The position numbers and the translations under genes are program-made. A DNA stretch of 64,000 bases, from IMG/VR virus record IMGVR_UViG_3300047476_002078, positions 291,875-355,874 of that record. One strand, given 5' to 3'. The notes beneath the pieces were generated by a model. The model saw only the letters and a list, made by a program, of their open reading frames with translations, was not told the DNA's origin and searched no databases. Below, one piece after another: positions 10,763 to 64,000 of this stretch; position 1 is the first letter of the stretch; every line of letters starts with the position of its first letter.

Positions 10763-11632
10763 ATGAAACCAGCAGATAACGCAACAAAACAAAAAGTAAT
10801 CAGCGAACTGATTAAAACCGCCGCAGGCAGAGCAAAATTAGCTGCCTCTATGGTTCAACCTCTTCGCTTCCGTCGTGATTACACTTCAATTGGACGTAAA
10901 ACATTCCTAGTTGAAGCTTTACCAGATGGAGCACTTCCAATCTACGATAAAGACCCAAAGGCTACTGCCTACATTATCGGTGAAGAAGGTGAAAACATTC
11001 TTGCTATCCAAAAGCCTAAGCGTGTTATTTTCCCTCTTTTCGAGATTGCTTCTAACCCAGAAATTCCTCTAACGCAGATCAAAGAGCGTCGCTTCGACCT
11101 AATCGAACGTGCTCAAGACCTTGCTAAAGCTGAAATTCAAGCTGAAGAAGATGGTCGTGTATTTGAAATCATGAACGCAATCGCAGGTGCGGCTACTGAC
11201 GATGGTATCACTAACCCTGATATTCCAGTTGTAGCTCCTCTAACTGCTTCTGTTATGGCTGACTCTTTTGCAGACGTTGAGCGTCACGATCTTCGTGTTG
11301 CTAAAATTTTCGCAAACGCTAAAGACTATACAGATATTCGTAAATGGGGTCGCGACGTTCTCGACATCGAAACTCAGCAAACATTACTTAAAACAGGTCT
11401 TCTTGCATACCTTTGGGGTGCTCAAATTCTTGTTTCTCGTCGTGTTCCAGTAAACTACGTTTATACTTGCTGTGAAGCAGAAATGTTTGGACGTATTCCT
11501 GTAAGAACTGAACTTACTGTTCTTTCTGCGGATGATCCGAAAGCAAGAACTATCGGTTTCTCAATCTTTGAAAATATCGGAATTGGTGCTCATAACCCTG
11601 CCGGTCTTTCAAGACTTGTTCTTACTCGATAA
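10763..11632 (+). CDS. major capsid protein (HK97 fold)
   Basis: GRAKLAASMVQPL...LPDGALPIYD...FEIASNPEI...EEDGRV pattern, which from memory resembles capsids of Bxz1/E3-like myoviruses. AAGGAG RBS, strong high-expression codon bias, followed by a strong terminator. Confidence 0.85.
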   Translation: MKPADNATKQKVISELIKTAAGRAKLAASMVQPLRFRRDYTSIGRKTFLVEALPDGALPIYDKDPKATAYIIGEEGENILAIQKPKRVIFPLFEIASNPEIPLTQIKERRFDLIERAQDLAKAEIQAEEDGRVFEIMNAIAGAATDDGITNPDIPVVAPLTASVMADSFADVERHDLRVAKIFANAKDYTDIRKWGRDVLDIETQQTLLKTGLLAYLWGAQILVSRRVPVNYVYTCCEAEMFGRIPVRTELTVLSADDPKARTIGFSIFENIGIGAHNPAGLSRLVLTR

Positions 11633-11655: not shown

Positions 11656-11690
11656 AAGGGCGACCAGAAATGGTCGCCCTTTTTATTTTG
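11656..11690 (+). terminator. intrinsic terminator after the major capsid gene
   Basis: Perfect 11-bp stem AAGGGCGACCA-GAAA-TGGTCGCCCTT followed by TTTATTTT. Confidence 0.9.
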
Positions 11691-13515
11691 TGATTTTAAA
11701 TTTCCAATTTCCAGAATTCCATATTGAATAAATTCCTTTAGACGATAGAATTTGATCTGCGGTTAAATTGCTATTAAATGATTCTGGAAAAAATGATTTA
11801 ATTTTATGTTTTTGAAATGCTTCTCTTGACCAACGTCTGCGAAAATTTGTGTAGAATAATCTCGGTCCTGTATCTTCTACTAACTCAAATCCGTTTTTAA
11901 AATACACTGTGTTTTCTGCTACTGGAGATAAGTCTCTATCGCAGTATGAAATTATTGTATGCCATTTAAGAGTCTTCATAGCGTGTTTTAAGAGCCTTGA
12001 AAAACCTCCTCTAACCGATGTTCCTAGTCGAGAAGAGAATCTACTGATCTCTAACCCTTCTGGATGATTACGAAAACTCATTGCACATTGTATTTCATCT
12101 TTTTCATCTACCAAAGCAAATTGAGCTATTGCTTGAGCCTTACCATAAACATGTGTTTCATCAAAAAACTTAGAACAATCTATTTCTTTTATTTTTAGTG
12201 ATCTAGCATTTTTCTTATCTAATATTCCTAGCTCTGACTTAATAACTGATTGTATTTTTAAAAGACTCCAATCTTCCCAAAGATGAATTAACCTTATCCC
12301 TTCTTTGGTTGCGGATTGTGTCTTATTTAAGTGATAATTTTTTTCAACGGGTTTACCCCATTGTAAAGAGTGGGTGCTGTGGTGATATAGGCTATCAATT
12401 TCAAAAGCTAATTTTTTACTTTCAATATAAATATCTATCTCAAACCATTTACCTGTTGATGTGTTTTTAATAACGTCTTTAGTATTACACTGAACATTGA
12501 ATCCGAGAGACTCTATATATGAAGCTAATGCTATTTCAAGTTGTCCTCTTTTATTACCTACAAGCGGAAAGCATTTTCGACACCGTGGGGTCAAATAAAG
12601 GTCATCATAAAATTCTAACCCACAATCTAAATGTTTTATTTTGTATTGTTTATATCCCTTAGTAAAACCGTCTTTGGTAAAGATTCCTTTGTATTCATCG
12701 AGTAGAGCATAATTAAAAAAATCAAGAGTTTTTAATACCTCTGCATATTTTTTATCAGTGATGGTAGCGACTCTTTTTTGTATAACTTCTTGATTTGAAA
12801 GAGGTGATTCACTTCCATACCGAACTTTATTAGTATTTTGAATTTTTGAACGAACTATATTTGAAGATGCTGCGTGAGCAGTTCCATATCTTTCAATATT
12901 TGTGTTTAATATTTTCTGTTTTACTTCAGGGTCTTGTTGAGCAAAATTAAAACCATAGCGACATAGGTTTGTCTCTTTTCTTTTTACAAGAGCCTCTTCA
13001 GATGTAGCAGAAACACTTTGAGAAATTTTAACTCTTGAATCTACGAATTGAGCGACATTATCGACACAGTATTTTTCTTTTACTGTTATCTGAGTAGCTT
13101 TTTTAATTTCATCTGATTGTTGAGCGTACTCAACTCCATACAATTTCTTTGTAGTAGATCGCATTTTTTCGATTGCTAACTTTCTATTTTCTGATTCTTT
13201 GCGTAGCTCTAGGTTAAAAAGATTAAATCTTTCTTTTATAGTATTAGGCTTGATACCAAGTTTAGAAGAAAGAGATTCAATACTTTCACCTGACTTATAA
13301 TCATTATGGATATTTTCCCAGTATTCTTTATCATTTTTTGGGACAAGAGGTTTAAAAGAATTTCGAGGAAAGTAGTGGCTTTCAGAACTAAATCCTAAAG
13401 AACGCATACGGGAGTTAAAGGTTGCTTTTTTGTAACCTAATACAATCATAGCTTCTTCTTTGGAAATCTTTCCATGTGCATAATTAAGTAAGATTTGTGT
13501 TTCTTCAGGAGACAT
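11683..13515 (-). CDS. Hef-like putative homing endonuclease (HTH, YG-x-x-N/Y-x-x-Q repeats, Zn finger, Vsr/PD-(D/E)xK-like nuclease, GNAT-like C-terminus)
   Basis: ATG 13515 with AGGAGG RBS. Repeats YGVEYAQQ, YCVDNVAQ, YGFNFAQQ, YGTAHAAS, YGSESPLS; HLDCG...CRKC; EIDIYIESKKLAFEIDSLYHHS; EISRFSS...GGFSRLLK...IISYCDRD. Confidence 0.7.
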   Translation of the reverse strand: MSPEETQILLNYAHGKISKEEAMIVLGYKKATFNSRMRSLGFSSESHYFPRNSFKPLVPKNDKEYWENIHNDYKSGESIESLSSKLGIKPNTIKERFNLFNLELRKESENRKLAIEKMRSTTKKLYGVEYAQQSDEIKKATQITVKEKYCVDNVAQFVDSRVKISQSVSATSEEALVKRKETNLCRYGFNFAQQDPEVKQKILNTNIERYGTAHAASSNIVRSKIQNTNKVRYGSESPLSNQEVIQKRVATITDKKYAEVLKTLDFFNYALLDEYKGIFTKDGFTKGYKQYKIKHLDCGLEFYDDLYLTPRCRKCFPLVGNKRGQLEIALASYIESLGFNVQCNTKDVIKNTSTGKWFEIDIYIESKKLAFEIDSLYHHSTHSLQWGKPVEKNYHLNKTQSATKEGIRLIHLWEDWSLLKIQSVIKSELGILDKKNARSLKIKEIDCSKFFDETHVYGKAQAIAQFALVDEKDEIQCAMSFRNHPEGLEISRFSSRLGTSVRGGFSRLLKHAMKTLKWHTIISYCDRDLSPVAENTVYFKNGFELVEDTGPRLFYTNFRRRWSREAFQKHKIKSFFPESFNSNLTADQILSSKGIYSIWNSGNWKFKITK

Positions 13516-13996
13516 CAAGTCCTCCTTTAAGCTTTAGTAGAACCTCTTCAACAGTTAAATTTGGGTAATATTTTTCTTGAACGTATTTAAGCTTTTTAAT
13601 ATTTATATTTGTGGGCTTATTCTTATAGTATGAATCATTTCTAAGTTGAGAAGACATACAACCACAGCTTTTAGTTGTTCCTTTAATAAGATACTGGCTC
13701 CTTACATCAACTACATTTCCGCAAAAACATAAGCACGTCCAATAACCTCTACGAGATATTTTTTGTGTAGTTAAAAAACCAAATTTTTGATTCTCTTGAA
13801 TTTTTCTTCGACCAGATAAAACTTTTTTTCTTAAACATCCGCAAGATTTTGTATTTTTTAACAAATATGTATTTTTTTCACAGATAGTTCCACAGTCACA
13901 CATAACAAGCCAGTTACGGTTTTTCTTATCGTTTTCTAATTGGTCTATCACGACCATTGATCCAAACCTTTCTCCGATTAAACTTTTTCTTTTCAT
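13505..13996 (-). CDS. Cys-repeat protein of the type found N-terminal in phage HNH/AP2 endonucleases, lacking a nuclease domain
   Basis: Two copies of G-x-(R/K)-FG...W.(C/V).C(D/F)CG...K-SCGC. Confidence 0.65.
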   Translation of the reverse strand: MKRKSLIGERFGSMVVIDQLENDKKNRNWLVMCDCGTICEKNTYLLKNTKSCGCLRKKVLSGRRKIQENQKFGFLTTQKISRRGYWTCLCFCGNVVDVRSQYLIKGTTKSCGCMSSQLRNDSYYKNKPTNINIKKLKYVQEKYYPNLTVEEVLLKLKGGLDVS

Positions 13997-21727: not shown

Positions 21728-22606
21728 TTGAAAAACATATTAATATTTATAGCATTTTCTTTTTTTATAACTTCAGTTAAAGCAGATTTACCAAAAAATG
21801 ATCTCTACATTCCAAGCCACGTTAAAACTTCCTCAACGATTACAGAAGAAGATTTTTTAAAAGCTATAGAAGATATGAAAAATATCTATTTGCCCATTTT
21901 TAAAAATAACTACGACGCTGAATTAGTAATTGAAGCTAAATGGCAAGACGGAACAGTAAATGCTTTTGCTCAACAGACAGGTAAAGTATGGAAAGTGAGC
22001 ATGTATGGAGGTCTTGCAAGACATAAAGAAACTACCCTTGATGGTTTTCGTGCTGTTATATGTCATGAAATTGGTCATCATATAGCAGGAGCACCAAGAA
22101 AGCCTAGCTTTGTCGGAATTTCATGGGCATCAAATGAAGGTCAGTCTGATTATTATGCTACGACAAAGTGCTTGAGAAAATTTTTATCTCAACCTGAACA
22201 AATTAAAGAAACTTACGCTTTATATAGAAAAGAAATAACTGACGAAGAGGATTTATTCGCAAAAAATCAATGTAAGCTAGTTCATAAAACCTTCAAAGAT
22301 AGAGCGATATGCTTTAGATCAGCGTTAGCTGGAAAATCATTGGCTCGCCTTCTAGGCTCTTTAGGCGGAAACGCTGAAGTGTTTTTTAGTAAAAAAGATA
22401 CACGAAAAGTAACAAAAACAAATCATAATCATCCTAATGCTCAATGTAGAATGGACACTTATTTCCAAGGAGCTTTGTGCATTAATGATATGGATGAACT
22501 GGCTGAAGCCGAAGATGTTAAAAAGGCATACTGCACAGCTATTGAAAATTTTGAGATAGGTATAAGACCTGACTGTTGGTACGCAGCATCCGAATACGAG
22601 AAATAA
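21728..22606 (+). CDS. exported zinc metallopeptidase-like protein (HExxH, M48-like) with signal peptide
   Basis: N-terminus MKNILIFIAFSFFITSVKA-DL (signal-peptide pattern); VNAFA; CHEIGHHIAG; SNEGQSDYYAT; several Cys. Confidence 0.7.
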   Translation: MKNILIFIAFSFFITSVKADLPKNDLYIPSHVKTSSTITEEDFLKAIEDMKNIYLPIFKNNYDAELVIEAKWQDGTVNAFAQQTGKVWKVSMYGGLARHKETTLDGFRAVICHEIGHHIAGAPRKPSFVGISWASNEGQSDYYATTKCLRKFLSQPEQIKETYALYRKEITDEEDLFAKNQCKLVHKTFKDRAICFRSALAGKSLARLLGSLGGNAEVFFSKKDTRKVTKTNHNHPNAQCRMDTYFQGALCINDMDELAEAEDVKKAYCTAIENFEIGIRPDCWYAASEYEK

Positions 22607-23008: not shown

Positions 23009-25249
23009 TCATTTCTTGAAAAATAGTTTAAAGCTCAGACATCCGTTTATTTTTTTATTGTTGAAAAACAAAGAACCGAAGTTGAATGAGTGGTTTACAA
23101 AATATGCTGTAATAGAATTACCAAAAGAGCCGTTTTTACATTCTATGTTTATAAATATCTTTCTACCTTGCACGTCGATAGGATTAAAATAAAAGCTAAA
23201 CCAATCGTTATCTTGAATATTATCACAACCTACTGAAGAGAATCTGAGTAAATCACCGTTTAAAGAATTTGTGATAGATAGAAATAAATTACAATAATTT
23301 TTTCTGGAAAAAGTTCCCAAAAATAAATCTATTCTACAAAGATTAGGAGAATCTATGAAAACTTCCTGAGATATTTTTTTATTGCCGAATATTTCTCCGA
23401 AATTGTGCGTATGAAAATTTTGTTGCATCCCAAGTATAACTTGATTGTCTTCTTTTTCAGTAACTTGAATTAACCATTCTTGATAAGAATTATTTCCGTT
23501 GTTATCTACAAAATTACAGGAGAGGCGGTATATTCCTTTATTCTTGCTTGAAAAAATGTAAAAATGTCCTGAATGAGATATTTTATCATCGTTTAAAAAC
23601 CAGACTATTGGATAATCTTTTCTATGATTTTTTATCTCGAATCGTTGAGTTGTATCAGCTTCTAAATTAATTGATTGTACTGGAGCTTTATTATTTGTTT
23701 GAGTTTCTTTTGTTTTTATAAAAGTATGCGTGTTACCTTTATGCCAATAACCTGTCGTTGTAATAACTGTTGGAAAAATATTTTTCCATTTTTCGTGTAC
23801 TTTCTTAAATTCTTGCCAGTATCTATCTAATCCGTTTTTAGTAGAGGATGTGCCATCACTTTTATGATAAGCTGGGCAATTAATAACGACATTGAACATT
23901 CCTTTATTTTTTGAAATTAAGGATATGTCTGGTCCGTAAAAATGAAAATCTGATAGAGTGTATTCATCAAAGTAAATTTCATTACTTTTTCTGATTATTA
24001 TGCAAAGCTCATCTACTACATCAACTATACCTTCTGAAAATTGACCATATTTGTGATCTTTTCCTTCGTAAGGGTATGTTATTTCTCCATAGCAATGAAC
24101 CCAAATCTTTTCTTTAGGCTCTACTGGAATACCTTTATGAACAGGGGTTCTAATCCACTTAACTCCAGCTAAACCTGCAACTCCAAAACCTTGATATTTT
24201 GCAATTTCACGCAGAAATTCTTTAGTCCAATTTTTATTATAAATAACATCGTGGTGCGTACAAATGACAAAATCTGTTTTGGATTCTCTAATTCCTTTGT
24301 TCAAGGCTTTTGCAGATGAATATCTATTATCAAAATTGTATATAATTCTGAGATCAAAATTTTGATTCACTTGCTTCAAAAGTGATGAGATCAAACATTC
24401 ATTTAAAAGTGCTATGTCATGCGTACACACAACAAAGGTCATTTCATAAATTTTAGAATTTTTAACATAGATGTTTATGTCATGTGAAAAATCAGATACG
24501 TCTGATTTTATAACATGCTTCCATCTAGTCTTAAAAAATTCAAAATTTTTAGGCAAATTAGGATTAGCTTTAGAATAACTTTCGTAATGTCTTAAATTGG
24601 ACTGTGAGCATCCAACGATTTTTTTTATCTTGTGGTATTTAATTTTTAAACACAAGTCAACATCTTCATAAGCCCAATTATAGTTAGCATCAAAACCCCA
24701 AACATCTTCAAAATCCTGTTTCCTAATTAATAGGCAAGCCCCTGTAACAGACTGGTATTCTCTAGTTTTTAAATGGGTTTGTTTGTTGAGAGTTTTGATA
24801 TTCTTATATAAAGGGTCACTTATATTCACAGGCGATAGATTTTTATCAATTAAAACTCCGCCGTGTTGAAGTTCCCCGTTTGGATAGAAAAGATTAGCCC
24901 CGACTACTCCAATCGAATCATCATTTTCAATAAGGTTTAACATCGGAGTTAAAAAATCGTCTGTGGCTTCAGTATCATTATTTAAAAATAACAAATATTT
25001 ACCACTAGCTTGCCCTGCTAGATAGTTGTTCATGCTACTGAAGTTACCTTCATTAGTTCTCTCAATAATTTTTATTCTTGAATCTTTGAGAGACTGTAAC
25101 CACTCTAAAGAGCCGTCAGATGAACTATTTTCTCCAATAATCCATTCCCAATCAATAGAACTTAAATGCGTCTGTATTGACTGAACACATGTTTTTAAAA
25201 CATTTAATCCGTTATAAGTTGGAGTTATTATTGATACTTTTTTCATCAC
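23009..25249 (-). CDS. multi-domain glycosyltransferase (two GT2/GT-A domains plus C-terminal beta-sandwich domains)
   Basis: VSIITPTYN, LFLNNDTE, GACLLIR...EDVDLC (GT2 no. 1); FVVCTHD, ICTHHDV, DELCII (GT2-like no. 2); C-terminal DNDWFSFYF beta-rich region. Confidence 0.85.
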   Translation of the reverse strand: MMKKVSIITPTYNGLNVLKTCVQSIQTHLSSIDWEWIIGENSSSDGSLEWLQSLKDSRIKIIERTNEGNFSSMNNYLAGQASGKYLLFLNNDTEATDDFLTPMLNLIENDDSIGVVGANLFYPNGELQHGGVLIDKNLSPVNISDPLYKNIKTLNKQTHLKTREYQSVTGACLLIRKQDFEDVWGFDANYNWAYEDVDLCLKIKYHKIKKIVGCSQSNLRHYESYSKANPNLPKNFEFFKTRWKHVIKSDVSDFSHDINIYVKNSKIYEMTFVVCTHDIALLNECLISSLLKQVNQNFDLRIIYNFDNRYSSAKALNKGIRESKTDFVICTHHDVIYNKNWTKEFLREIAKYQGFGVAGLAGVKWIRTPVHKGIPVEPKEKIWVHCYGEITYPYEGKDHKYGQFSEGIVDVVDELCIIIRKSNEIYFDEYTLSDFHFYGPDISLISKNKGMFNVVINCPAYHKSDGTSSTKNGLDRYWQEFKKVHEKWKNIFPTVITTTGYWHKGNTHTFIKTKETQTNNKAPVQSINLEADTTQRFEIKNHRKDYPIVWFLNDDKISHSGHFYIFSSKNKGIYRLSCNFVDNNGNNSYQEWLIQVTEKEDNQVILGMQQNFHTHNFGEIFGNKKISQEVFIDSPNLCRIDLFLGTFSRKNYCNLFLSITNSLNGDLLRFSSVGCDNIQDNDWFSFYFNPIDVQGRKIFINIECKNGSFGNSITAYFVNHSFNFGSLFFNNKKINGCLSFKLFFKK

Positions 25250-25835
25250 TTAACTGCTTAAACTCTTTGAAAATGTTTTTCATCCTAAAGTAAACTTTTG
25301 CGGTAGTTCTCGCATCCTCTAATGCTCCGTGAGCACAAGGATTTTCAATTTGAAAAAAATCGCTCAAATTTTTTAGGGATGGGCTTTTTGCCTGTACTAT
25401 ACCAGAATCTATTAGTTGATAACCTAGAACACATGTATCTACACGGTGATAGGAAAAGAGTTCGCTCCAGCCAAGAAAACCATGCTCACTCATAAATTCA
25501 TTTGTGAAACCTACATCAAAATTAATATTTTGTCCGACTAATACAGGGCTATATTTTTTTACAACTGAAACGCACCACTCAGCATAACCTCTAGCTACAG
25601 AAAGATTATCCTCATAAGACAAATCACCTTTTCTTGAAAAGCAATTATTAACTTTCAAAGCGTACATAGTGACTTTTTTATTTCCCTCAAGAGGGTTTAA
25701 AAATTTTTGAAAATGTTCTAATTCGTTACCGTCTTCATCATAGATAGCAGAACCTAGTTCCAGTAATTTATGTAATCCGTTGTCTAATCCACCTGTTTCA
25801 GTGTCATGGAAAAAGTAATATTTTTTGTTAAGCAT
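25212..25835 (-). CDS. DEDDh 3'-5' exonuclease (DnaQ-like)
   Basis: ExoI HDTETGGL, ExoII QNINFDVGF, ExoIII HGALEDA. Confidence 0.9.
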   Translation of the reverse strand: MLNKKYYFFHDTETGGLDNGLHKLLELGSAIYDEDGNELEHFQKFLNPLEGNKKVTMYALKVNNCFSRKGDLSYEDNLSVARGYAEWCVSVVKKYSPVLVGQNINFDVGFTNEFMSEHGFLGWSELFSYHRVDTCVLGYQLIDSGIVQAKSPSLKNLSDFFQIENPCAHGALEDARTTAKVYFRMKNIFKEFKQLSDEKSINNNSNL

Positions 25836-26283
25836 GAAAACCTCTATTTTTTGCAGTTGAAATTTCTTTAAACATAAAAGCTATTAATTCTGAAAATAAT
25901 GGAAGCCCGTTTAAAGTAAACGCTAATAAATCAAAATCAAATTTTGGATTATCTAAGTCAATCACCTTAATTAAATCTACTTTTTCAACAATTTTGAATT
26001 TGTATAAAATGTACTCAGGATTACTATTTTCATCAAAATTTTTCACATTGATTTGGAATGATTCCATGACACTAGCTGAAAGATTGTGAACAAATAATGG
26101 ATGTCCTGCTTTATACATGTTGTATGAAACAAATTCAAAATTATCTCCCACATTAAAAGGGTATCTTGTGTCAGAGGAAGGGTCAATTTTGACTAATAGG
26201 TTATTTTCTAATCTATATGCTTCCCAAGGCTGTAAGTGAGCTACGCCATACTTTTGAAACATCTCATATAAGTTAAAAGACAT
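25828..26283 (-). CDS. hypothetical protein
   Basis: 151-aa ORF in the same antisense operon, with overlapping stop/start. Confidence 0.65.
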   Translation of the reverse strand: MSFNLYEMFQKYGVAHLQPWEAYRLENNLLVKIDPSSDTRYPFNVGDNFEFVSYNMYKAGHPLFVHNLSASVMESFQINVKNFDENSNPEYILYKFKIVEKVDLIKVIDLDNPKFDFDLLAFTLNGLPLFSELIAFMFKEISTAKNRGFHA

Positions 26284-26292
26284 AAAAATACC

Positions 26293-26592
26293 TTAAAGTT
26301 GAAGCTTAGACTTGGAAGGCATGATAATGCCTGTGGATTTTTGAGTTCTATAAGCTTCATACTTTTCGACTACATCAATTTTTGGATTGGATATAGCTAC
26401 TACGTATTGCTTAGATACTGTTAATTCGTCTTCAAACAAGGGATTATTTTGCATAGCGATACCGTTTTGGCTTGGGCTTAAAAATAATGGGTTTGTGACA
26501 ATATACATGTCTTCTTTTACGGTAATATTTCCCATAACGATGCCGAGGTTATCTATGACCAAAACTTTAACTTCTTTGGTTAATTCTTGCAT
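26293..26592 (-). CDS. phage Sm-like small protein
   Basis: Start revised to ATG 26592 (AAGGAG RBS). Beta-rich core and C-terminal YEAY...STGIIMP, as recalled for phage Sm-like proteins. Confidence 0.5.
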   Translation of the reverse strand: MQELTKEVKVLVIDNLGIVMGNITVKEDMYIVTNPLFLSPSQNGIAMQNNPLFEDELTVSKQYVVAISNPKIDVVEKYEAYRTQKSTGIIMPSKSKLQL

Positions 26593-26626
26593 AATGACTC
26601 CTTTCAATAATTTACAACTACAATGT

Positions 26627-26656
26627 ATTATATGTAACTTTTCCCAAATGAGTTAA
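26627..26656 (-). promoter_or_regulatory. possible sigma70-type promoter for the antisense operon
   Basis: Minus strand TTAACT-N18-TATAAT, about 35 nt upstream of the 26592 start. Confidence 0.4.
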
Positions 26657-26658
26657 GA

Positions 26659-27483
26659 ATGGCACTATTTAAAGGTAATGTAAAACCCTACGTTGTAATT
26701 GATGGTTTAGGAATTAGGTTAAATTTCGGAGAAACCGTAAATTTAGCTGAATGGCAAACAGCTAATCCAAATTTTAAATTCGCTTTAAAAAATAAGTGGG
26801 TTATTTCCGCCGACAGAAAAGCTCTGCTTTACAACACTCTCGAATCCAAAAAAATGACGGAAAAAAACAATGTACAGCGTCATAATGAAATCGTTAGTCC
26901 TGCCAATAGAGAAATAGTAAAAGAAGTCTCTGGAATAGACCCTGCCGTTTTAAATCAGGTTTTAGAAAAACAGGCTATATTTTTACGAAGTGTTCAGCAA
27001 TCTTATGATTCATTAAAACAAGAAGTTAAGGAAAACAAAGAGATTAAAAAAGAAGATGTTAAGATTGACATGTCTCCATTTTATCAAGCTTTATCTGCGT
27101 TACAGGAACAACAAAAACAAATAGTTGAGCAGATTAACAAAACAGACAACTCTCATCTATTTACCGCTTTATTACATGAAATTAGAAATCTGAGTTTATC
27201 CCAACAGCCTCAAGAATCTCAAAAAACTGTGGAGCTTCTTTCACAAATTCAGAAGACTTTAGAAAATACAAAGACACAAGTTATCTATAATAATTCAGGA
27301 ACAGGAAGAATTGAAAATCAAAGTGAAGGTTTCAGAATCCAAGACTTTGAAGAAAAATACGTTCCTAAAGTGGAAGACTTGAATGTTAAAGATTCTAAAA
27401 TTGTAACTCAACAAACACAATCAGGAAGCGTGGATGATGCGTTAGCTGCATTGAAGAAATTAAAAAATCAAATGAAAAAATAG
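26659..27483 (+). CDS. coiled-coil protein, candidate partner/adaptor of the actin-like ATPase
   Basis: Small N-terminal beta domain, Q/E/K-rich heptads, terminal amphipathic helix SVDDALAALKKLK; 9 bp upstream of the actin gene. Confidence 0.65.
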   Translation: MALFKGNVKPYVVIDGLGIRLNFGETVNLAEWQTANPNFKFALKNKWVISADRKALLYNTLESKKMTEKNNVQRHNEIVSPANREIVKEVSGIDPAVLNQVLEKQAIFLRSVQQSYDSLKQEVKENKEIKKEDVKIDMSPFYQALSALQEQQKQIVEQINKTDNSHLFTALLHEIRNLSLSQQPQESQKTVELLSQIQKTLENTKTQVIYNNSGTGRIENQSEGFRIQDFEEKYVPKVEDLNVKDSKIVTQQTQSGSVDDALAALKKLKNQMKK

Positions 27484-27492
27484 GAGATGTAA

Positions 27493-28539
27493 ATGGAACA
27501 ATTAGAAAATCAAGAAATGCCAGCAAGCCCGAAACAAAAAGAACCCAAATATCTTTGTAAGGGTTTAGATATAGGAACAGGAACTATTATTGCTTCTCAT
27601 TTGGATGAGAATAATAATGAAGTTAAAAGTTTACGAGTCAGAGACGCTTTCGTGTCACTGGCTGTAGAGCAAAAACAAATGTTGAAGCTATCAAATATTT
27701 CATATATTGAAGAAGGCGACAGAGTTATTATTGTTGGAGACGATGCTGCAAATATCGCAAACATATTTAATCAGCCTTTAAGAAGACCTCTTAGTAAAGG
27801 AACAATTTCTCCGCAGGAAATTGAAGCTCAAAAAGTAATCAAGCATTTGTTTAGGCATGTTCTTGGTGAAGCTCCTGTGGCAGGAACACCTTGTTATTAT
27901 TCTGTGCCTGCGGCTCCTATTGATGCTGATATGGACGTTACTTACCACGAAATGATTATGGGTCAAATGGTTGAATCTTTAGGTTGGCAAGCGTGTCCTG
28001 CAAATGAAGCTCAAGCAATCGTATATTCAGAATGTGCTGACACTATGTTCAGCGGTTTTGCAATGTCCTTTGGTGCAGGGATGGTAAACGCATCTCTTTC
28101 ATATAAATCCATCCCTCTAATTACTATGGCTGTTGCTAGAAGCGGTGATTACGTTGATGAATCAGCCGCTAAAGCAACAGGTCTATCTCCTGCAAAAATT
28201 TGTGCCGTAAAAGAAAAAGGCGTTGATTTGTTAAACCCGAAAGGGCGAGAGCAAGAAGCAATCGCTATTTATTATAAAACCTTAATTCGTTACGCTTTAA
28301 CTAACTTTGTAGAAAAAATTAAAAGTCAAAACGTGATGGCTCAAATTGATCTTCCTGAATCTGTTCCTGTAGTTATTGGTGGAGGAACTTCTCTGCCGAT
28401 CAACTTTATGGAAGTTGTAAGACAGGAAGTTCAAAAGTTGAAAGGTTTTCCTTTCTCGGTAACAGATATAAGACACGCTAAGAATCCTCTATTCGCAGTT
28501 TCCAGAGGACTTTTAATCATGGCACAAAACCATGAGTAA
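27493..28539 (+). CDS. actin-superfamily ATPase (MreB/FtsA/ParM-like)
   Basis: Phosphate-1 GLDIGTG, connect-1 NEAQAI, phosphate-2 SFGAGMVN, adenosine VVIGGGTS, connect-2 PLFAVSRG; AGGAG RBS. Confidence 0.85.
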   Translation: MEQLENQEMPASPKQKEPKYLCKGLDIGTGTIIASHLDENNNEVKSLRVRDAFVSLAVEQKQMLKLSNISYIEEGDRVIIVGDDAANIANIFNQPLRRPLSKGTISPQEIEAQKVIKHLFRHVLGEAPVAGTPCYYSVPAAPIDADMDVTYHEMIMGQMVESLGWQACPANEAQAIVYSECADTMFSGFAMSFGAGMVNASLSYKSIPLITMAVARSGDYVDESAAKATGLSPAKICAVKEKGVDLLNPKGREQEAIAIYYKTLIRYALTNFVEKIKSQNVMAQIDLPESVPVVIGGGTSLPINFMEVVRQEVQKLKGFPFSVTDIRHAKNPLFAVSRGLLIMAQNHE

Positions 28540-28548
28540 GGAGTAAGG

Positions 28549-29889
28549 GTGTATTATTTTCTCTCAAGAGAAATTAAAAGACGTGTCGTCGAGGAACTGA
28601 AAGGTATTTTTTCAGAATACCCCGGACTTTCTAAATTTAAAGTTTCTGATAAATTCCCGTATGATGAAAGACCTCAGTATGGAGTTGTTGTGAAAAATGT
28701 TTCAGGCAACTCCATGCCAATCTCTTCAGATAACTTTATCGGTACGGTAGTAAGTCATTGTTTTACAGCCTCATTGAAAGGTAAAAAAAGTCTGATTTTT
28801 GATTGGGTTCGAGAAGACTCTGCAAACATAACAAAATATGAAATGGATGATTTATCTTCTCAAGTTGATGGCAGCAAAAGGATTTTTCAACTAAATTTTC
28901 AACCTACTTCAGGTGAGGGCAATCTTGCTTTAGCTACGAGTCCAAAACAGATTTTGGCTTATGCAAACGGCAACCCTATACCTGTAATTGACTTAAAAGA
29001 AAAACAAGTCGTGCTAAATTATGCCCCTGCTATAGGAAGCAAACTTGTTGTAGAGTATCATCGAAGAAATTTAGTTCCTGCGGGTCTTTATTATTTTGAA
29101 GTCATTGAACCAAACAAAGTTATGATTGATACTTTGTTAAATTTTGATGAAGTTATAATAAAAGAAGCTAGAGGTGATGAGGTTTCATATCAATTGCCTC
29201 ATTTTCCTATACGCCAAAAAACTTTTGAAATTTTTGAAAATGACAGAACTGTTTTACGAGAAGGTATCCATTATAATGTAAATTTGGATACAGGTTTGAT
29301 TACGTGGTTAATTAACCCTGACGATACTAATGGTACTACTTTAATCAAAGGTGCTAATTATCGAGTTTTTTATCGTTACCAAAGTAATTCTATCGGACCA
29401 GTTGATATACAAAAACAAACTTTGTGTCAGGCACTATCGGGAGTTGTTGTAGCTATAAGTAATTGGGTGGAAGTAGGGGATAAACAAGTAGTAATTGTAA
29501 CTGACAAAAGAGAAGACGCTGCCCAAGAATATGGGGGTCATTTTGAAACAAGTCTTTCGATGGATATATACAGTCGTGACCCTATTCAAAGAGAAATTAT
29601 TGCAGATTTGTTAGCCGTTAAGATTTTTGGGCATCTAAAACCTATATTTGATTCACAGGGTTTAATGATAACAAATGTATCTTTGAACGGAGAATCTGAA
29701 GATTTATATGATGAAAATACTGATACTGTGTATTACATGGCAGGCATAGATATTAATTTTAATAGTGATTGGAGATTTTATGCTCCTCTCCTTCCAAAAA
29801 TAAAATTTTTAGACATTCACATAGAATTATTGGAAAGTTTACAAAAATACCAAGTTGACTTTATACCTAAAACCGAAAGTTTGAGATGA
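28549..29889 (+). CDS. putative tail terminator / tail completion protein with inserted beta domains
   Basis: GTG start with AAGGAG; lies before the sheath gene; N- and C-terminal halves (SDKFPYDERPQYG; MDIYSRDP..REIIADL) flank DLSSQVDG..R.F.L modules. Confidence 0.5.
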   Translation: MYYFLSREIKRRVVEELKGIFSEYPGLSKFKVSDKFPYDERPQYGVVVKNVSGNSMPISSDNFIGTVVSHCFTASLKGKKSLIFDWVREDSANITKYEMDDLSSQVDGSKRIFQLNFQPTSGEGNLALATSPKQILAYANGNPIPVIDLKEKQVVLNYAPAIGSKLVVEYHRRNLVPAGLYYFEVIEPNKVMIDTLLNFDEVIIKEARGDEVSYQLPHFPIRQKTFEIFENDRTVLREGIHYNVNLDTGLITWLINPDDTNGTTLIKGANYRVFYRYQSNSIGPVDIQKQTLCQALSGVVVAISNWVEVGDKQVVIVTDKREDAAQEYGGHFETSLSMDIYSRDPIQREIIADLLAVKIFGHLKPIFDSQGLMITNVSLNGESEDLYDENTDTVYYMAGIDINFNSDWRFYAPLLPKIKFLDIHIELLESLQKYQVDFIPKTESLR

Positions 29890-29898
29890 GGATTAAAT

Positions 29899-30297
29899 AT
29901 GCCTACGTATGAATATTTCTGTGAAGATTGCAATTATCATTTTGAAGAATTTAAAAAAATGGATGAAGCGGGACCTCAAACAAACTGTCCAAAATGCTCA
30001 AAAATAGAGGCTACAAGAAGAGTTTTTAGCCCTGTAGGCATTATGAGAGCAGGTACTTCAAGAGACACTGTTGATAGACTTATAGGAGCAGAAGCAGAAA
30101 AAAGATGGGAAGACATCAATGATCGCAAAAAACAAAAAGACAAAATAAGAAAAGAATCAGGAAATCAAGCAATTAAGTCAGAGATCAAAAAAGATGATTC
30201 TGGAAAAATAAACTATGAATATAAATCAGTAAATAAAGAGAGAATTGAAGAACGAAAAACTCTCTATTCGGAATTCTCAAAGCAAGAAAAGCCTTAG
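29899..30297 (+). CDS. FmdB-family zinc-ribbon protein
   Basis: MPTYEYFCEDC...F...CPKC...RRVFS signature. Confidence 0.8.
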   Translation: MPTYEYFCEDCNYHFEEFKKMDEAGPQTNCPKCSKIEATRRVFSPVGIMRAGTSRDTVDRLIGAEAEKRWEDINDRKKQKDKIRKESGNQAIKSEIKKDDSGKINYEYKSVNKERIEERKTLYSEFSKQEKP

Positions 30298-30387
30298 AGA
30301 ATATTCCTCCCAAATTATTTATATTAATAATGTAGAATTTTTTTAGTGAAATATAGATAAAGTTAATTCTTTTTGGAGGATTTTTTC

Positions 30388-33141
30388 ATGGCAATTTTTA
30401 GCACTTACGCCCCTCCGGGCGTGTACGTTCAGACATTAACAGATACTTCAGTTCCAAGCATTATTGCAGGTTTGAGATTACCTGTTTTTATTGGAGTTGG
30501 AGCGGAAACTTTAAAATTAACCAATTTTGAAATTATCAGAGGTTCTTCTGCGACTTCTGATATTAGAATGGTTGGCGAAGACGTATCAAATCAATTTACA
30601 GGAACTAACAGAACTTTTAACGTGGTTCATTTTCCCGTTGTTGATGGAAACGGAAACGCTTTTGTAACAAATGACCCAAATGCTATTACTGTAACTGTAG
30701 ATGGGGAGCCTACTTCTATTATAAACCTTAACGGTGAGTTAGGGCAAGTAACTCTAGGAACTATACCTCCTCTCGGCTCAACTGTCAGGGTGTCCTATTT
30801 CTTTTCTCGAAAAGATACCAAAATCACAGACGATGATGTTAGTTCACAGGCGGACGGTTTAAATAAAACTTTCAAAGTTAATTTTCCTAGAATTGTTTCT
30901 GGGAATAATGGTGGAATTTCAACTACTGACCCTTCAAGATTGTCCGCTACTGTAAATGGTTCATCTGTAGTAATTTCTTCTGTTGACGGTGAGCTTGGAT
31001 TGGTAACTCTTTCAAGTGCTCCTGAAGAAGGAGATACAGTTCTTTTAACTTATTACACAAACACTTGGCAGGATACTTTTGACTTCCTTCCTCAAGATAT
31101 TACTTTAAGCAAAATAAATGCTGTAGGTAATACTCCAAATAAACAAGATTATTTTTTAGGTTCTGACTTCGTTATAGAATCTGGAAATAAAATTCAATGG
31201 GGAAGCTCAGTAAGTGTAGGAGTAGGTGAATTAGAATCAGGTGAAGCCTTCGATGACACTCAAATCCAAGGTATTTTAGTAGATAACCGTGCTTTCTTTA
31301 GACAGTGTTCTGGCTCATCTAACGGAAATAATAAAGTTTTTCAACTTGAATTTTTCCCTACAGATGGTACAGGTTTAGCGAAAGTAACAGATGATATTAC
31401 TAAAATTCAAGTATATGTTGGTAATTCTGTAGCTTCAGCCAAAGCTGCTGGACCTGTTTCTGTTGCACAACTTGTAGGAGGAACTAGAACAGTAACTCTT
31501 AAAAATGCACCTTCGGCAGGAATGAAAGTATATGCGTCTTTTTATTACAATAATTTAACAGACGACTCTTTCACAATCACAAATAAAGTAGCTTCTGTTG
31601 GAGCTTCCGCAGGAGATTACGAAATATCTTCAGATAATTTCGGGCAACTATTCGACGCTAATTTCGATATTACTGGTTCAATGGTAGCCGCTGCTAATTT
31701 TAGCATTGAAGGTATTAGTTTTCCGGGCGATGTAGAAGACACTTTAACAATACCAAGAGCGTCACTTGAAGAGACAGTGACTCTGACATTTACAGATAGT
31801 AACACTTATGTTGTTACCTCCTCTTTAGGTGCTTCTGGCTCAAACGGTACTGGATATTTAGACCAAACTTATATTGATTCAAAAACAGGGTTACGTTTTA
31901 CTGTTTTAAGCCCTTCGACATTTAGTTACCAATCTGGTGATTTTTTAATGATCGAATGTTCTCAAACATTTAAGACAGATTCAAACCCAACAAAGTCAAT
32001 ACCCGGAATCAATTTAATTGTTTCAAATTCTACTGGGGTAGGAGTAGGAAACACGGCTATTGTTAATACTTATAACAAAGGTGGAAGCGAGCCTGCTATC
32101 GGAGATTCTTATTACGTTTCTCTTGAGTACGCTAAAGCTGATTTCAAGCCAAATGTTTACTTAAATTTCAGAGATGTCGTAAGCAACTTTGGTGAACTAA
32201 ATGTTGAGAACAGACTAACTTTAGCAAGTAATTTAGCGTTCCTTAACGGTGCTCCTGCGGTAGCTCTAGTTCAAGTTAAAAAAGGTCCAGATGGATTACA
32301 GGCAAATGACTCTGATTATTTTGCAGCCATGGATTCATTAGAAAACCCTATGGATGGAGATGTAAGACCAAACATTATGGTTTGTTTAACAACAAGCAAA
32401 CCTGTAATTCAATACATGAAAAAGCATGTTGAGAAAGTTTCAAGTACAAGGTACGCACTTGAAAGAACTGGTGTTTTTGGTTACGCAATCGGAACAACTC
32501 CTGAATCTGCTCAAGATTTTTCAAAGGCTTTAAGAACCGAGCGTTTAATAGGAGTATATCCAGACGGAGCTATTGTAGCTCTAACTGACGCATTAGGTCG
32601 TGAAGTTGAAACCGCAGTTGATGGAAGCTTTTTAGCGGCAGCTTTAGCTGGATTAGCTTGTAATCCTTCTTTCGATGTTGCTACTCCGCTAACACGTAAG
32701 AGCATGGTAGGGTTTCGTCGCTTGTTTAGAAAACTTGACGCTGTTTCAGCCAATCAATCTGCAACCGCAGGTTTAACGGTTCTTACAGAAAATCAAGCGG
32801 CTATTCAAATTAGACAAGCTGTAACTACAGACATGAGTAACGTGCTTACTAGAGAGCCTTCTATAGTGTTTATTAAAGATTATGTTCAGCAACAAACAAG
32901 GGCAATTCTTGACCCATTTATTGCAGAAAAATTCTTACCTACTCGCATAACAGATATTGAAATATCTCTAGCGAATATGTTCAAAGCACTAATCCAAGGT
33001 GAGATTGTAACTGCATATACAGGAATTAAGGCTACTCCTAGAGCGAGTGACCCTACTGTAGCAGATGTCGTAGCTTTCTATTCTCCTGTTTTCCCGTTAA
33101 ATTGGATTCAGGTAAATTACACTATCAGAACTAGCCTTTAA
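30388..33141 (+). CDS. contractile tail sheath protein with large insertion domains
   Basis: Start revised to ATG 30388 (GGAGGA RBS). N-terminal YAPPGVYV and LPVFIGVG; C-terminal DGSFLAAALAG...PLTRK...VAFYSPVFPLNWI.V sheath signature. Confidence 0.9.
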   Translation: MAIFSTYAPPGVYVQTLTDTSVPSIIAGLRLPVFIGVGAETLKLTNFEIIRGSSATSDIRMVGEDVSNQFTGTNRTFNVVHFPVVDGNGNAFVTNDPNAITVTVDGEPTSIINLNGELGQVTLGTIPPLGSTVRVSYFFSRKDTKITDDDVSSQADGLNKTFKVNFPRIVSGNNGGISTTDPSRLSATVNGSSVVISSVDGELGLVTLSSAPEEGDTVLLTYYTNTWQDTFDFLPQDITLSKINAVGNTPNKQDYFLGSDFVIESGNKIQWGSSVSVGVGELESGEAFDDTQIQGILVDNRAFFRQCSGSSNGNNKVFQLEFFPTDGTGLAKVTDDITKIQVYVGNSVASAKAAGPVSVAQLVGGTRTVTLKNAPSAGMKVYASFYYNNLTDDSFTITNKVASVGASAGDYEISSDNFGQLFDANFDITGSMVAAANFSIEGISFPGDVEDTLTIPRASLEETVTLTFTDSNTYVVTSSLGASGSNGTGYLDQTYIDSKTGLRFTVLSPSTFSYQSGDFLMIECSQTFKTDSNPTKSIPGINLIVSNSTGVGVGNTAIVNTYNKGGSEPAIGDSYYVSLEYAKADFKPNVYLNFRDVVSNFGELNVENRLTLASNLAFLNGAPAVALVQVKKGPDGLQANDSDYFAAMDSLENPMDGDVRPNIMVCLTTSKPVIQYMKKHVEKVSSTRYALERTGVFGYAIGTTPESAQDFSKALRTERLIGVYPDGAIVALTDALGREVETAVDGSFLAAALAGLACNPSFDVATPLTRKSMVGFRRLFRKLDAVSANQSATAGLTVLTENQAAIQIRQAVTTDMSNVLTREPSIVFIKDYVQQQTRAILDPFIAEKFLPTRITDIEISLANMFKALIQGEIVTAYTGIKATPRASDPTVADVVAFYSPVFPLNWIQVNYTIRTSL

Positions 33142-33147
33142 AAAATT

Positions 33148-33181
33148 ATACGAGAGGGAAGATATAACTTCCCTCTCGTAT
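33148..33181. terminator. 14-bp perfect inverted repeat after the sheath gene
   Basis: ATACGAGAGGGAAG-ATATAA-CTTCCCTCTCGTAT; no canonical U-tract. Confidence 0.7.
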
Positions 33182-33221: not shown

Positions 33222-33704
33222 TTGATGCTAAAGGTTTATATCAAGCCCTTATTGAGTAAATCTGTCTTAAAAAAGAAATTGGACAGATTACTAACACGCC
33301 GTCTTAAATATAATTTAGGGAGGGCAGGTTTGAAAAAAATTCGAGAGCATCAAAAGAATTACGGTAAAAACGGTAATTCTATCAGAAAAAGTGTATCTTT
33401 TACGATAGGTAAAAGCAGTATAACTTTTCATTTAAACGCTATCGGCTCCTATCATAACTATGGGGTAAGAAAGCATAAAATGAAATACTTGCAAAAGGCA
33501 ACACGTCCTATTCCTATCAAAGATAAGAACACAGGAGAGATTGTTTTTAGATGGGCTAGTAAAAAGTCCATGAGGAAAAAAGGAAGTTGGACTCACCCCG
33601 GTCTTCCCAAAACAAAGTTTTTTGAAAAGGGTGTAGAAGATTTAAAAAAAGATTTTCGTAAAAAATTAAAAAGTGAATTCAAAAAATATATGAGTAAAAA
33701 ATAA
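33222..33704 (+). CDS. basic virion morphogenesis-type protein
   Basis: K/R-rich; WTHPG motif typical of neck/tail-completion proteins. Confidence 0.5.
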   Translation: MMLKVYIKPLLSKSVLKKKLDRLLTRRLKYNLGRAGLKKIREHQKNYGKNGNSIRKSVSFTIGKSSITFHLNAIGSYHNYGVRKHKMKYLQKATRPIPIKDKNTGEIVFRWASKKSMRKKGSWTHPGLPKTKFFEKGVEDLKKDFRKKLKSEFKKYMSKK

Positions 33705-42848: not shown

Positions 42849-43616
42849 ATGAGCAGAGAAATAAAAGTAGAAAGAATTTGCGATCATAAAGTAGTAGAAG
42901 ATATAGCTTTTATTGAAAGTGACAGAAGAACTATAAACATAATCAGAGATTTAGCTGTAAGTAAAAGTTTACAAATTAAAAGAAACGGTTTCGTTATTTC
43001 AGAAAATAGCCCTGAATTTGGGTTTAAGGTATTAGAAAATAAAAATTCTAGTCGGAAAAAAATTGAATTAAAGAAAAAACAAAAAAGTTCAGATGATTTT
43101 TTTGAATTAAGTTATACTACCTCTTTAACAGACTGCCCTAAATGCGAAGGTCTTTCTTATTATTTTGATTACGCTGTTGATGAATTAGGAAGGCTTGTTC
43201 TTATAAGCAATGAGGAAAAACTTCTCCAAGATGTTGTTAAGGGAACACTAACAATTAGAGGAACAAATACGTACTATCCTTGGTATGGAACAGTATTAGA
43301 CGCTTTAATTGGCGGTAAAATAACCAATATAGATAATTTAAAATTGTTAATGGCTCAAGACGTTGAAGCTTTATTACAAAATTTAAAAGACCTGCAAGAT
43401 CAACAAGCTTCGTTTCAAGAAGTTTCAGATGAAGAGAGGATAGAGCAATTAATAAGTATAGATGTAAGCCAGCCTGACTTTACCAATCCAACTCTCGTTG
43501 AAATATCAATAATTTTTCGTAATAGAGCCGGAAACATTAGAGATGTTAGAAGGGTTATTGATAAAAACAACCAGATGAAGCTGTATGCCCAAATTCAGGA
43601 TAAATTGAAAATATGA
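42849..43616 (+). CDS. baseplate wedge protein, gp25/GpW-like, with N-terminal extension
   Basis: EEKLLQDVVKGTLT.RG...YPWYGT.L..LIG pattern; directly before the J-like gene; CDH...CPKC. Confidence 0.7.
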   Translation: MSREIKVERICDHKVVEDIAFIESDRRTINIIRDLAVSKSLQIKRNGFVISENSPEFGFKVLENKNSSRKKIELKKKQKSSDDFFELSYTTSLTDCPKCEGLSYYFDYAVDELGRLVLISNEEKLLQDVVKGTLTIRGTNTYYPWYGTVLDALIGGKITNIDNLKLLMAQDVEALLQNLKDLQDQQASFQEVSDEERIEQLISIDVSQPDFTNPTLVEISIIFRNRAGNIRDVRRVIDKNNQMKLYAQIQDKLKI

Positions 43617-53902: not shown

Positions 53903-53903
53903 T

Positions 53904-55556: not shown

Positions 55557-64000
<8,444 letters not shown>

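Follow-up and report, generated by a model that had tools for sequence, protein, structure and literature searches.

A huge freshwater phage encodes a volactin-family actin next to a putative adaptor whose terminal motif recurs in archaea and bacteria

An actin-family gene and its upstream partner in the neck and tail gene block

We analysed a 64,000-nucleotide stretch of DNA (the window; positions 291,875 to 355,874 of IMG/VR record IMGVR_UViG_3300047476_002078) from a freshwater phage genome of 355,874 bp. An earlier note, made from the sequence alone, had described an actin-family ATPase with a coupled coiled-coil partner embedded in the tail operon. Both ORFs lie on the + strand exactly where the note had placed them, and its observation is confirmed. 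The features discussed below are the following, in window coordinates:

26659-27483 (+), putative adaptor gene (274 aa): small N-terminal domain (aa 1-58), disordered and helical middle, conserved C-terminal module (aa ~226-274)
27430-27477 (+), predicted terminal amphipathic helix of the adaptor (aa 258-273, ...VDDALAALKKLK...), the proposed volactin-binding peptide
27484-27492 (+), 9-nt spacer with a GGAG Shine-Dalgarno sequence before the actin ATG
27493-28539 (+), volactin-family actin (348 aa)
27562-27585 (+), phosphate-1 motif GLDIGTGT (aa 24-31)
28003-28017 (+), connect-1 motif NEAQA, with E172 as the presumed catalytic Glu
28066-28089 (+), phosphate-2 motif SFGAGMVN (aa 192-199), with Ser in place of the usual Asp
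28375-28392 (+), adenosine motif IGGGTS (aa 295-300)
28549-29889 (+), conserved virion protein (446 aa, p446), tail-terminator-like by lead only
29899-30297 (+), Zn-ribbon protein (FmdB-type)
30373-33141 (+), tail sheath; the likely true start is the ATG at 30388, after a GGAGG
33148-33181 (no strand), hairpin with a 14-bp stem just after the sheath stop, probable end of the transcription unit
33222-33704 (+), HK97-gp10-like neck/tail-completion protein (lead)

The 348-aa product is an actin-fold protein beyond reasonable doubt. It matches the Pfam family Volactin (PF25216) at E 3.3e-70 and 237.6 bits, against a gathering cut-off of 35 bits, over positions 3-321 of the 321 in the profile, and a search of the whole genome gave the same result. 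Its AlphaFold2 model has a pLDDT of 92.2 and a pTM of 0.90, and the top Foldseek matches in the PDB are all filament-forming actins (MreB, MamK, BeeR and actin), at E about 1e-13 and TM 0.6-0.67. It is 36-41% identical to chromosomal genes of Halobacteria and Planctomycetota, and specifically 36-39% identical over residues ~20-348, with no large indels, to genes of about 35 Halobacteria species. In a tree of the family, three clean clades were recovered, Halobacteria (support 100), Planctomycetota (99) and phage (92), and the phage sequences, among which our protein falls, form their own, much more divergent clade. Rooting this tree with planctomycete MreB gave very long outgroup branches and an unresolved base, and we claim no direction of transfer.

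To assess the conservation of the nucleotide-binding motifs we examined 120 relatives. G24, D26, G28 and T29 are nearly invariant, as is T299, while E172, S192, G194, G196, N199, G297 and G298 are invariant; the role of E172 is inferred from the general actin/MreB/ParM motif pattern. The note had singled out phosphate-2 as non-canonical. The motif is real, but Ser in place of Asp is the signature of the whole family, including the haloarchaeal and planctomycete chromosomal genes, and not a phage-specific anomaly. The same holds for a second signature, ARGGDW(I/V)D, in which R216, G218, D219 and D222 are conserved and which is also found in the cellular members. The phosphate-2 motif lies in a predicted strand-loop-strand at residues 188-204. 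An hhalign comparison of the family with a single MreB aligned only the RPLxxGVI region, so the equivalence of S192 to the canonical Asp rests on the motif pattern and on this predicted structure. In relatives, inteins have invaded both the phosphate-2 and the ARGGDW motifs.

The upstream gene belongs to no Pfam or PHROG family, and its 12 homologues, 35-88% identical, were found only in close relatives. AlphaFold2 gave a confident N-domain (residues 1-58, pLDDT about 95), disorder at 59-94, four helices of moderate confidence between 95 and 203, disorder at 204-257 and a terminal helix at 258-273 (pLDDT about 83), in which A261, L265, L268 and K269 are invariant. The small N-domain and the terminal amphipathic helix described in the note were thus recovered, but a single long coiled coil is not shown.

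Gene order and constraint in related phages

The spacing of these genes is tight, with 9-nt spacers and a GGAG before both the actin ATG and the GTG of the next gene. That next gene, p446, is 35-50% identical across loci, with 59 invariant columns, and immediately follows the actin gene in most relatives, yet its assignment as a tail terminator, made in the note, is only a lead, resting on a weak PHROG "virion structural protein" hit and on atlas leads to terminator families. The Zn-ribbon gene between it and the sheath gene (Pfam PF09723, E 1.5e-12) is present in 56 of 70 relatives with room. The tail sheath (PHROG 2839, E 1.1e-35) begins 1.8 kb downstream of the actin and lies within 5 kb downstream of it in 56 of 70 viral loci. 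The gp10-like protein (atlas score 0.95 to HK97-gp10-like clusters) lies 0.6-2.7 kb upstream of the actin in distant relatives. The order actin, p446, Zn-ribbon, sheath is conserved at about 45% actin identity. Absence of conserved linkage in relatives had been named beforehand as a result that would refute the note's reading, and the linkage proved to be conserved.

The actin is the slowest-evolving gene of the block. As an example, in the loci labelled L002 and L003 the actin is 78-82% identical, against 34-36% for the partner, 44-49% for p446, 44-58% for the Zn-ribbon protein and 53-58% for the sheath. At least 560 IMG/VR contigs encode a relative, from genomes up to about 620 kb and with GC from 32 to 68%, so the note's statement that phage actins are rare does not hold for this clade. 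None of 50,697 GenBank phage records from isolates carries the gene.

We sought to elucidate whether these genes could be transcribed together. The hairpin after the sheath gene (14 pairs, 7 of them GC) is terminator-like, and lake metatranscriptome contigs cover all five genes and both junctions. This RNA evidence is thin, since depth is 2-5, the contigs were assembled from strain variants, DNA carry-over is not excluded and there was no silent stretch to serve as a control. A scan for sigma-70 promoters was no better than shuffles (38 sites found against 40 expected), and the sheath may have its own promoter in the 90-nt AT-rich spacer that precedes it.

A terminal motif shared with the genes upstream of cellular volactins

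To assess whether the partner has counterparts elsewhere, we examined the genes upstream of volactin in cellular genomes. A same-strand upstream gene is present in 33-35 of 35 haloarchaeal loci, where it encodes a four-TM, CdpA-like protein (DUF7139), and in 34 of 37 planctomycete loci, where it encodes a coiled-coil protein. All of these end in a motif related to that of the phage partner, [VL]-[SD]-[DE]-A-x-x-A-L-[KR]-x-[LM]-[KR] or a close variant. An HMM built from the last 52 aa of the phage partner alone gave 49 hits among 13,790 frames of the cellular loci (best E 4e-7), of which 43 are the ORF directly upstream of volactin and most of the rest are the same gene with a miscalled actin start. 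The reverse HMM, built from cellular motifs only, found the phage partner as the best hit of 2,696 frames in the phage genome (E 0.003, against 1.8 for the next). Comparisons with hhalign gave E 4.7e-4 and 7.6e-3, yet the shared motif is short, with 22 aligned columns and probabilities of only 5-33%.

Among distant phages, 64 of 76 loci have a motif-bearing ORF within 3.5 kb upstream of the actin, as judged with a second-round HMM that was partly trained on its own hits, and no partner was detected in the other 12. At first the gene upstream of the actin in these phages was taken as the equivalent of the partner. It encodes a 218-263-aa protein with the motif HWxxxGxxFYxDHLL and is in fact a ferritin/Dps-like (DUF5856) insertion, whose homologue in our phage genome lies 117 kb away; the motif-bearing partner lies just upstream of it. 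A MAFFT alignment had also suggested homology of the N-domain across the phage clade, but this failed reciprocal HMM tests, so that the N-domain is not detectably homologous between close and distant phage partners and a common cargo across the clade is not shown. A complex prediction of the actin with the full-length partner scored 0.01 with a partner pLDDT below 50, an outcome that, by the method's own terms, is not evidence either way and that we do not use.

A filament-plus-adaptor reading and its alternatives

The earlier note's interpretation is partly supported. An actin-family protein, its genetic coupling to an upstream partner with a terminal amphipathic helix and its place in the neck/tail block all hold, and the adaptor idea gains independent comparative support from the recurrence of the motif in two cellular phyla. 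However, the family is volactin and not ParM/AlpC-like, and the partner is not demonstrably ParR-like. That a filament positions virion assembly or traffics particles, as the note proposed, remains a hypothesis.

With middling confidence, we favour a filament-plus-adaptor module of the volactin type, kept by a large clade of huge contractile-tailed phages and expressed with the neck/tail genes. In this view, the actin would bind nucleotide through the motif set of its family (D26 in phosphate-1, E172, and S-x-G-x-G-M-x-N in phosphate-2) and polymerise into dynamic filaments, as Haloferax volactin does, while the partner would be a bipartite adaptor whose C-terminal helix (...VDDALAALKKLK) docks on the filament and whose lineage-specific N-terminal domain holds a cargo or anchor. 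The conserved position beside the terminator-like, gp10-like and sheath genes makes a virion-assembly intermediate or assembly site the most likely cargo. What our data establish is the fold, the family membership, the conservation of motifs and of gene order, and a terminal motif shared by three lineages, whereas polymerisation, ATP use, binding of the helix to the filament, late co-expression and the nature of the cargo are inferred, without direct evidence. Within the family, dynamic filaments in vivo are known only for Haloferax volactin, and the Foldseek matches of the phage protein to filament formers are suggestive only.

The closest known system is volactin (VolA, HVO_2015) of Haloferax volcanii, which forms dynamic filaments that touch the membrane by their tips and whose binding factors are unknown (PMC10869688), together with its four-TM, CdpA-like neighbour HVO_2016 (PMC12126565). 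The Pfam family, the phosphate-2 motif and an upstream same-strand gene with a related amphipathic ending are shared, but the phage adaptor carries a small soluble N-domain instead of a membrane-spanning one, the phage pair sits among neck/tail genes and not in a cellular chromosome, and the rod-to-disk shape change in which volactin acts has no obvious counterpart in a phage. MreB and MamK (with MamJ) are the closest solved structures by fold, and the RP(L/M)xxGvI motif is shared with MreB, yet sequence similarity is marginal (a phmmer search of the PDB found only MamK, at E 0.15), the phage protein has no MreB_Mbl (PF06723) hit at E up to 0.1, and planctomycetes carry a true MreB as well as the volactin-like gene. 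The PhuZ tubulin spindle of Chimalliviridae jumbo phages is also a phage-encoded cytoskeletal polymer in a huge phage, and it traffics capsids and positions the replication compartment (PMC13282480), which is the kind of role proposed here; but its fold is that of tubulin, it is not linked to tail genes and has no known dedicated adaptor gene, and no tubulin homologue (PF00091) was found in our phage genome.

Among the alternatives, the one that survives best, although unlikely, is DNA positioning of the ParMRC or AlpAC type, in which the N-domain would bind phage DNA and the filament would move or anchor replicating or incoming genomes, or maintain a plasmid-like pseudolysogen. The logic of an actin gene adjacent to that of an adaptor, whose short peptide is thought to engage the filament, matches ParM/ParR of plasmid R1 and AlpC/AlpA of corynephage CGP3 (PMC4446434, PMC5539076), the N-domain is small and could bind nucleic acid, and there are weak structural leads to AbrB-like and L9-N-like folds. 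Fold searches with its confident model returned only weak matches (L9 N-domain, YqbF, Mu FluMu N-domain and one AbrB-like fold, with E above 7e-4) and no ribbon-helix-helix. Against this reading, Volactin is the only Pfam hit of the actin, with none to ParM/StbA; the adaptor lies upstream and not downstream; only two-copy short matches were found in 25800-28800, with no iteron or centromere-like array within 26-29 kb, as the note had also stated; the pair sits inside the structural block in the great majority of relatives, not near replication genes; and the homologous adaptors in cells are a membrane protein and a coiled-coil protein, not DNA binders.

Less likely still is host remodelling, in which the filament would alter host cell shape, size or division to make room for very large virions, and its place among tail genes would reflect only late timing. 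The one studied role of volactin is in a cell-shape transition (PMC10869688), and, on general reasoning, huge phages benefit from larger cells. Yet the phage adaptor has no transmembrane segment, unlike the haloarchaeal one, the tight and conserved linkage to terminator-like, gp10-like and sheath genes is not explained, and there are no host data to support it. Least likely is a non-polymerising ASKHA ATPase acting as a neck/tail assembly chaperone, or a virion-packaged protein injected with the DNA, since, although the gene is embedded among structural genes and its best matches in BFVD (viral structures) are Hsp70-like proteins, the protein is only 348 aa and has no substrate-binding domain, its PDB matches are filament formers and not Hsp70, the studied member of its family, Haloferax volactin, polymerises in vivo, and the BFVD ranking probably reflects what that library holds.

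Phage cytoskeletons are known almost only from the PhuZ tubulin of nucleus-forming jumbo phages and a few ParM-like prophage or plasmid systems. Our literature searches for phage volactin or for actin in huge phages found nothing relevant, and a 2026 review of jumbo-phage biology mentions no phage actin at all. An actin family described only in 2024, in one archaeon, turns out to be a core, slowly evolving gene of a very large clade of uncultured huge phages, fixed next to the neck and sheath genes. A bolder reading, doubtful on present evidence but not excluded, is that volactin plus a C-terminal-helix adaptor is an ancient, portable cytomotive cassette shared by archaea, bacteria and viruses, whose adaptor front end is swapped to suit the cargo, and which in these phages has been built into the neck/tail morphogenesis module to gather, position or transport virion assembly intermediates, as an actin counterpart of the PhuZ spindle; the same motif would also identify HVO_2016 as the missing membrane anchor of Haloferax volactin. 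The adaptor motif makes the C-terminal peptides of HVO_2016, which has two C-terminal motifs, a concrete candidate for the unknown volactin-binding factors of Haloferax, and gives a handle for finding cargo in phages and planctomycetes. If confirmed, virion assembly in the largest phages would be spatially organised by actin, and volactin systems would follow the same adaptor logic as ParMRC while having arisen separately.

Genomic setting of the actin gene and its upstream partner

The window is the last 64 kb of a 355,874-bp IMG/VR virus record, with a GC content of about 33%, and the DNA and RNA runs that contain it come from freshwater and lake metagenomes. It carries a head module and a tail module, while searches of the window for tRNA genes and Rfam families gave no match, and no tubulin homologue was found in the genome. 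The features of the window relevant to this work are the following:

6165-7796: prohead protease-like gene of the head module
10763-11632: major head protein gene
11683-13518 (-): large HNH/homing-endonuclease gene (PHROG E 3e-79), on the opposite strand immediately after the major head protein gene
21728-22606 (+): 292-aa protein with a hydrophobic N-terminal leader and a weak zinc-metallopeptidase match (M48-like, HEIGH)
23009-25249 (-), 51566-53917 (-) and 53904-55382 (-): three large glycosyltransferase genes flanking the tail module, one of which (746 aa) has two GT2-type domains; they may act in virion or host-surface glycosylation
26659-27483 (+): partner gene (274 aa)
27493-28539 (+): actin gene (348 aa)
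28549: GTG start of the next gene, encoding a 446-aa protein
29899-30297 (+): FmdB-type Zn-ribbon protein with a Lys/Glu-rich tail
30298-30387: 90-nt AT-rich spacer before the sheath gene
30373-33141: tail sheath gene
43613-46732: baseplate wedge gene
55557-64000 (+): giant collagen-like Gly-X-Y gene

The last of these (GVQGET..., with an 18-nt period, a GC content of about 50% and a strongly purine-rich strand) is at least 2,814 aa long, runs off the end of the window and resumes at position 1 of the genome record. The 'direct terminal repeat' of the record is only an 87-nt identical prefix and suffix inside this array, and therefore looks like a circular-assembly overlap in a repeat rather than a true DTR. 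The length of the array may also be mis-assembled.

The earlier note had reported an actin-family gene preceded by a partner gene, and this observation held: both + strand ORFs lie exactly at the coordinates it had given. They are separated by 9 nt containing GGAG, and another 9-nt GGAG spacer leads into the GTG start at 28549.

A volactin-family actin in a conserved block of structural genes

The 348-aa protein matched Pfam PF25216 (Volactin) end to end (E 3.3e-70), and nothing else. Using 120 relatives as alignment, AlphaFold2 gave a model with pLDDT 92 and pTM 0.90, and the 50 best PDB matches listed by Foldseek for this model are filament-forming actins (MreB, MamK, BeeR and eukaryotic actin, at TM 0.6-0.67). 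By sequence alone, solved structures were barely detectable, MamK scoring E 0.15. The nucleotide-site residues G24, D26, G28, T29, E172, S192, G194, G196, N199, G297, G298 and T299 are invariant or nearly so across the 120 relatives.

The note had also pointed to a non-canonical phosphate-2 motif, SFGAG, and this motif is real. A scan of species-representative genomes found 321 relatives. After four probable mis-binned phage contigs, the best of them are chromosomal genes of Halobacteria (36-39% identity) and Planctomycetota (38-41%), all carrying the same S-F-G-x-G-M-x-N. Haloferax volactin forms dynamic filaments in vivo (PMC10869688), and Ser for Asp is invariant in the family to which it belongs (as read from sequences that did not include the Haloferax one itself), and is not a sign of a dead or odd enzyme. 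Equating S192 with the canonical Asp is an inference, based on the motif pattern and on the predicted strand-loop-strand at 188-204.

A tree of 92 family members plus two planctomycete MreB sequences gave three clean groups: Halobacteria (support 100), Planctomycetota (99) and a phage group (92), with an unresolved order at the base and far longer branches among the phages. Planctomycetes carrying the volactin-like gene and its coiled-coil upstream partner (genomes L067/L042, loci L089 and L090) also have a bona fide MreB (439 bits), so that the two actins coexist there. The family comprises 302 clusters at 50% identity with E of 1e-30 or better. At least 560 IMG/VR contigs encode a relative, some of them contigs of 350-620 kb, while among 50,697 GenBank phage records only two hold it, both uncultured huge phages of 485 and 595 kb.

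The architecture of the gene is not always homogeneous in the family. About 20 of the 150 best family representatives are ~700 aa long with two matched stretches, and in relatives such as P0137, P0139, P0146 and P0219 inteins with LAGLIDADG or HNH endonucleases interrupt the actin at three or more sites: one inside phosphate-2 (S|C-GAGM), one just after it (MVNS|C) and one in the ARGGDW motif. The gene in the window has none. Among other representatives, P0133 is a tandem double-actin fusion whose first copy is degenerate, while P0140/P0144/P0148 and P0211 have long acidic or coiled-coil N-terminal extensions fused to the actin domain.

We then examined the conservation of the genomic context. 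Close relatives (78-87% actin identity) keep the order partner, actin, 446-aa protein, Zn-ribbon, sheath and 160-aa protein, and relatives at only about 45% actin identity still keep actin, 446-aa homologue, Zn-ribbon and sheath. Among 79 IMG/VR loci, the sheath lies within 5 kb downstream in 56 of the 70 with room, the Zn-ribbon is present in 56 of 70, and the 446-aa homologue is directly adjacent in at least 49 of 78. None of these neighbours occurs beside the cellular genes. The 446-aa protein has leads to tail-terminator families and the 160-aa protein to HK97-gp10-like tail-completion proteins, although both are leads and not findings; the Zn-ribbon protein, of unknown role, is conserved between the terminator-like gene and the sheath gene across the whole phage clade. 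In two close relatives (L002 and L003) the actin is the most conserved gene of the block, with 78-82% identity, against 34-36% for the partner, 44-49% for the 446-aa protein, 44-58% for the Zn-ribbon and 53-58% for the sheath.

A C-terminal motif shared with genes upstream of cellular volactins

The partner has no Pfam or PHROG family. Only 12 homologues were detectable, all in the close group, and they diverge fast. AlphaFold2 with 42 sequences gave a confident N-domain at residues 1-58, disorder at 59-94, four helices between 95 and 203 at moderate confidence, disorder at 204-257, and a terminal helix at 258-273. The most conserved part is the last ~50 residues, ending ...SGSVDDALAALKKLK. 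Fold searches of the model gave only weak matches, to the L9 N-domain, YqbF, the Mu FluMu N-domain and DUF2635.

The main new result of this analysis concerns the cellular volactin genes, which also have a conserved same-strand gene directly upstream. In 33-35 of 35 haloarchaeal loci it is a ~300-aa DUF7139 protein (Pfam E 6e-44) with hydrophobic N-terminal segments, and in 34 of 37 planctomycete loci it is a ~250-aa helical protein. Their C-termini resemble the tail of the phage partner: haloarchaea have ...SSGVDxQVAGLKGLKGG and ...STVDDQTAKLKELRE, while planctomycetes have ...GGIAANLERLKKLKGG or ...SDVTDALARMKSLRGG.

To test this resemblance, we built an HMM only from the last 52 residues of the 14 phage partners and searched it against all 13,790 stop-to-stop frames of 76 cellular loci. 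This gave 49 hits at E of 10 or better (best E 4e-7), of which 43 were flagged as the ORF immediately upstream of volactin, and most of the other six are the same gene with a miscalled actin start. Conversely, an HMM built only from the cellular motifs found the partner as the best of 2,696 frames in the whole phage genome, at E 0.003 against 1.8 for the next hit. Profile-profile comparison aligned just these 22 columns, at E 4.7e-4 for haloarchaea and 7.6e-3 for planctomycetes.

In the distant phage clade, 64 of 76 loci have a + strand ORF of 190-460 aa within 3.5 kb upstream of the actin that ends in the motif, with only two other hits among 16,793 frames. The second-pass HMM used for this count is partly circular, although the first-pass HMM had already found about 25 of these ORFs. 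The gene seen directly upstream of the actin in many distant loci is not the partner, but a ferritin/Dps-like gene (DUF5856, sub-threshold) inserted between partner and actin in about a third of distant phage loci, for example L004:7305-7961, L005:7178-7957 and L007:7170-7961. The phage of the window keeps a 141-aa homologue of it elsewhere in its own genome (G000:C1:201919-202323). The N-domains of close and distant phage partners are not detectably homologous.

Expression and interpretation

No convincing terminator was found between 26659 and 33141, and a 14-bp-stem hairpin follows the sheath gene. Contigs from four lake metatranscriptomes cover pieces of all five genes, with one contig crossing the partner-actin junction (27350-27582) and one crossing the junction between the actin and the next gene (28432-28582). 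This evidence is weak, since depth is 2-5, the contigs are partly from strain variants, DNA carry-over is not excluded and there is no control stretch for comparison. Depth is greatest over the sheath and rises from about 30246, so the sheath may have its own promoter. The TTG start called for the sheath at 30373 is probably wrong, as an ATG at 30388 follows a GGAGG. A complex prediction gave no answer, and we do not count it either way.

The best-supported reading is a volactin filament plus an adaptor whose terminal helix would engage the filament and whose N-domain would hold a phage-specific cargo or anchor, expressed with the neck/tail genes. That the protein is an actin of the volactin family is settled, whereas the role of the upstream gene as a functionally coupled adaptor is supported by comparative evidence only. 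Polymerisation is inferred from family membership, and a virion intermediate as cargo, rather than DNA or the host envelope, is a conjecture from gene position. The interpretation offered by the note is supported in part: a phage actin coupled to an upstream partner with a terminal amphipathic helix, in conserved linkage with the neck/tail genes, is borne out, whereas the partner is not demonstrably ParR-like, and a role of the filament in virion assembly or traffic is conjecture. The pair does not belong to the ParMRC/AlpAC kind, since the actin family differs, there are no centromere repeats beside the genes (25800-28800) and no ParR-like fold was detected, but it may still work in a comparable way.

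The finding is real and of more interest than a lone phage actin, its proposed function being an inference from comparison and gene position alone. Actin-plus-adaptor systems are already known; what is new is one of a family not described in phages, with an adaptor motif that we did not find described in the literature searched, in which no paper mentions volactin-family genes in phages. Schiller et al. reported that volactin filaments touch the membrane only by their tips and invoked unknown volactin-binding factors (PMC10869688), while Liao et al. noted that the four-TM CdpA-like HVO_2016 lies next to volactin and suggested a cytoskeleton-linked role (PMC12126565). The shared motif offers a specific candidate for the contact.
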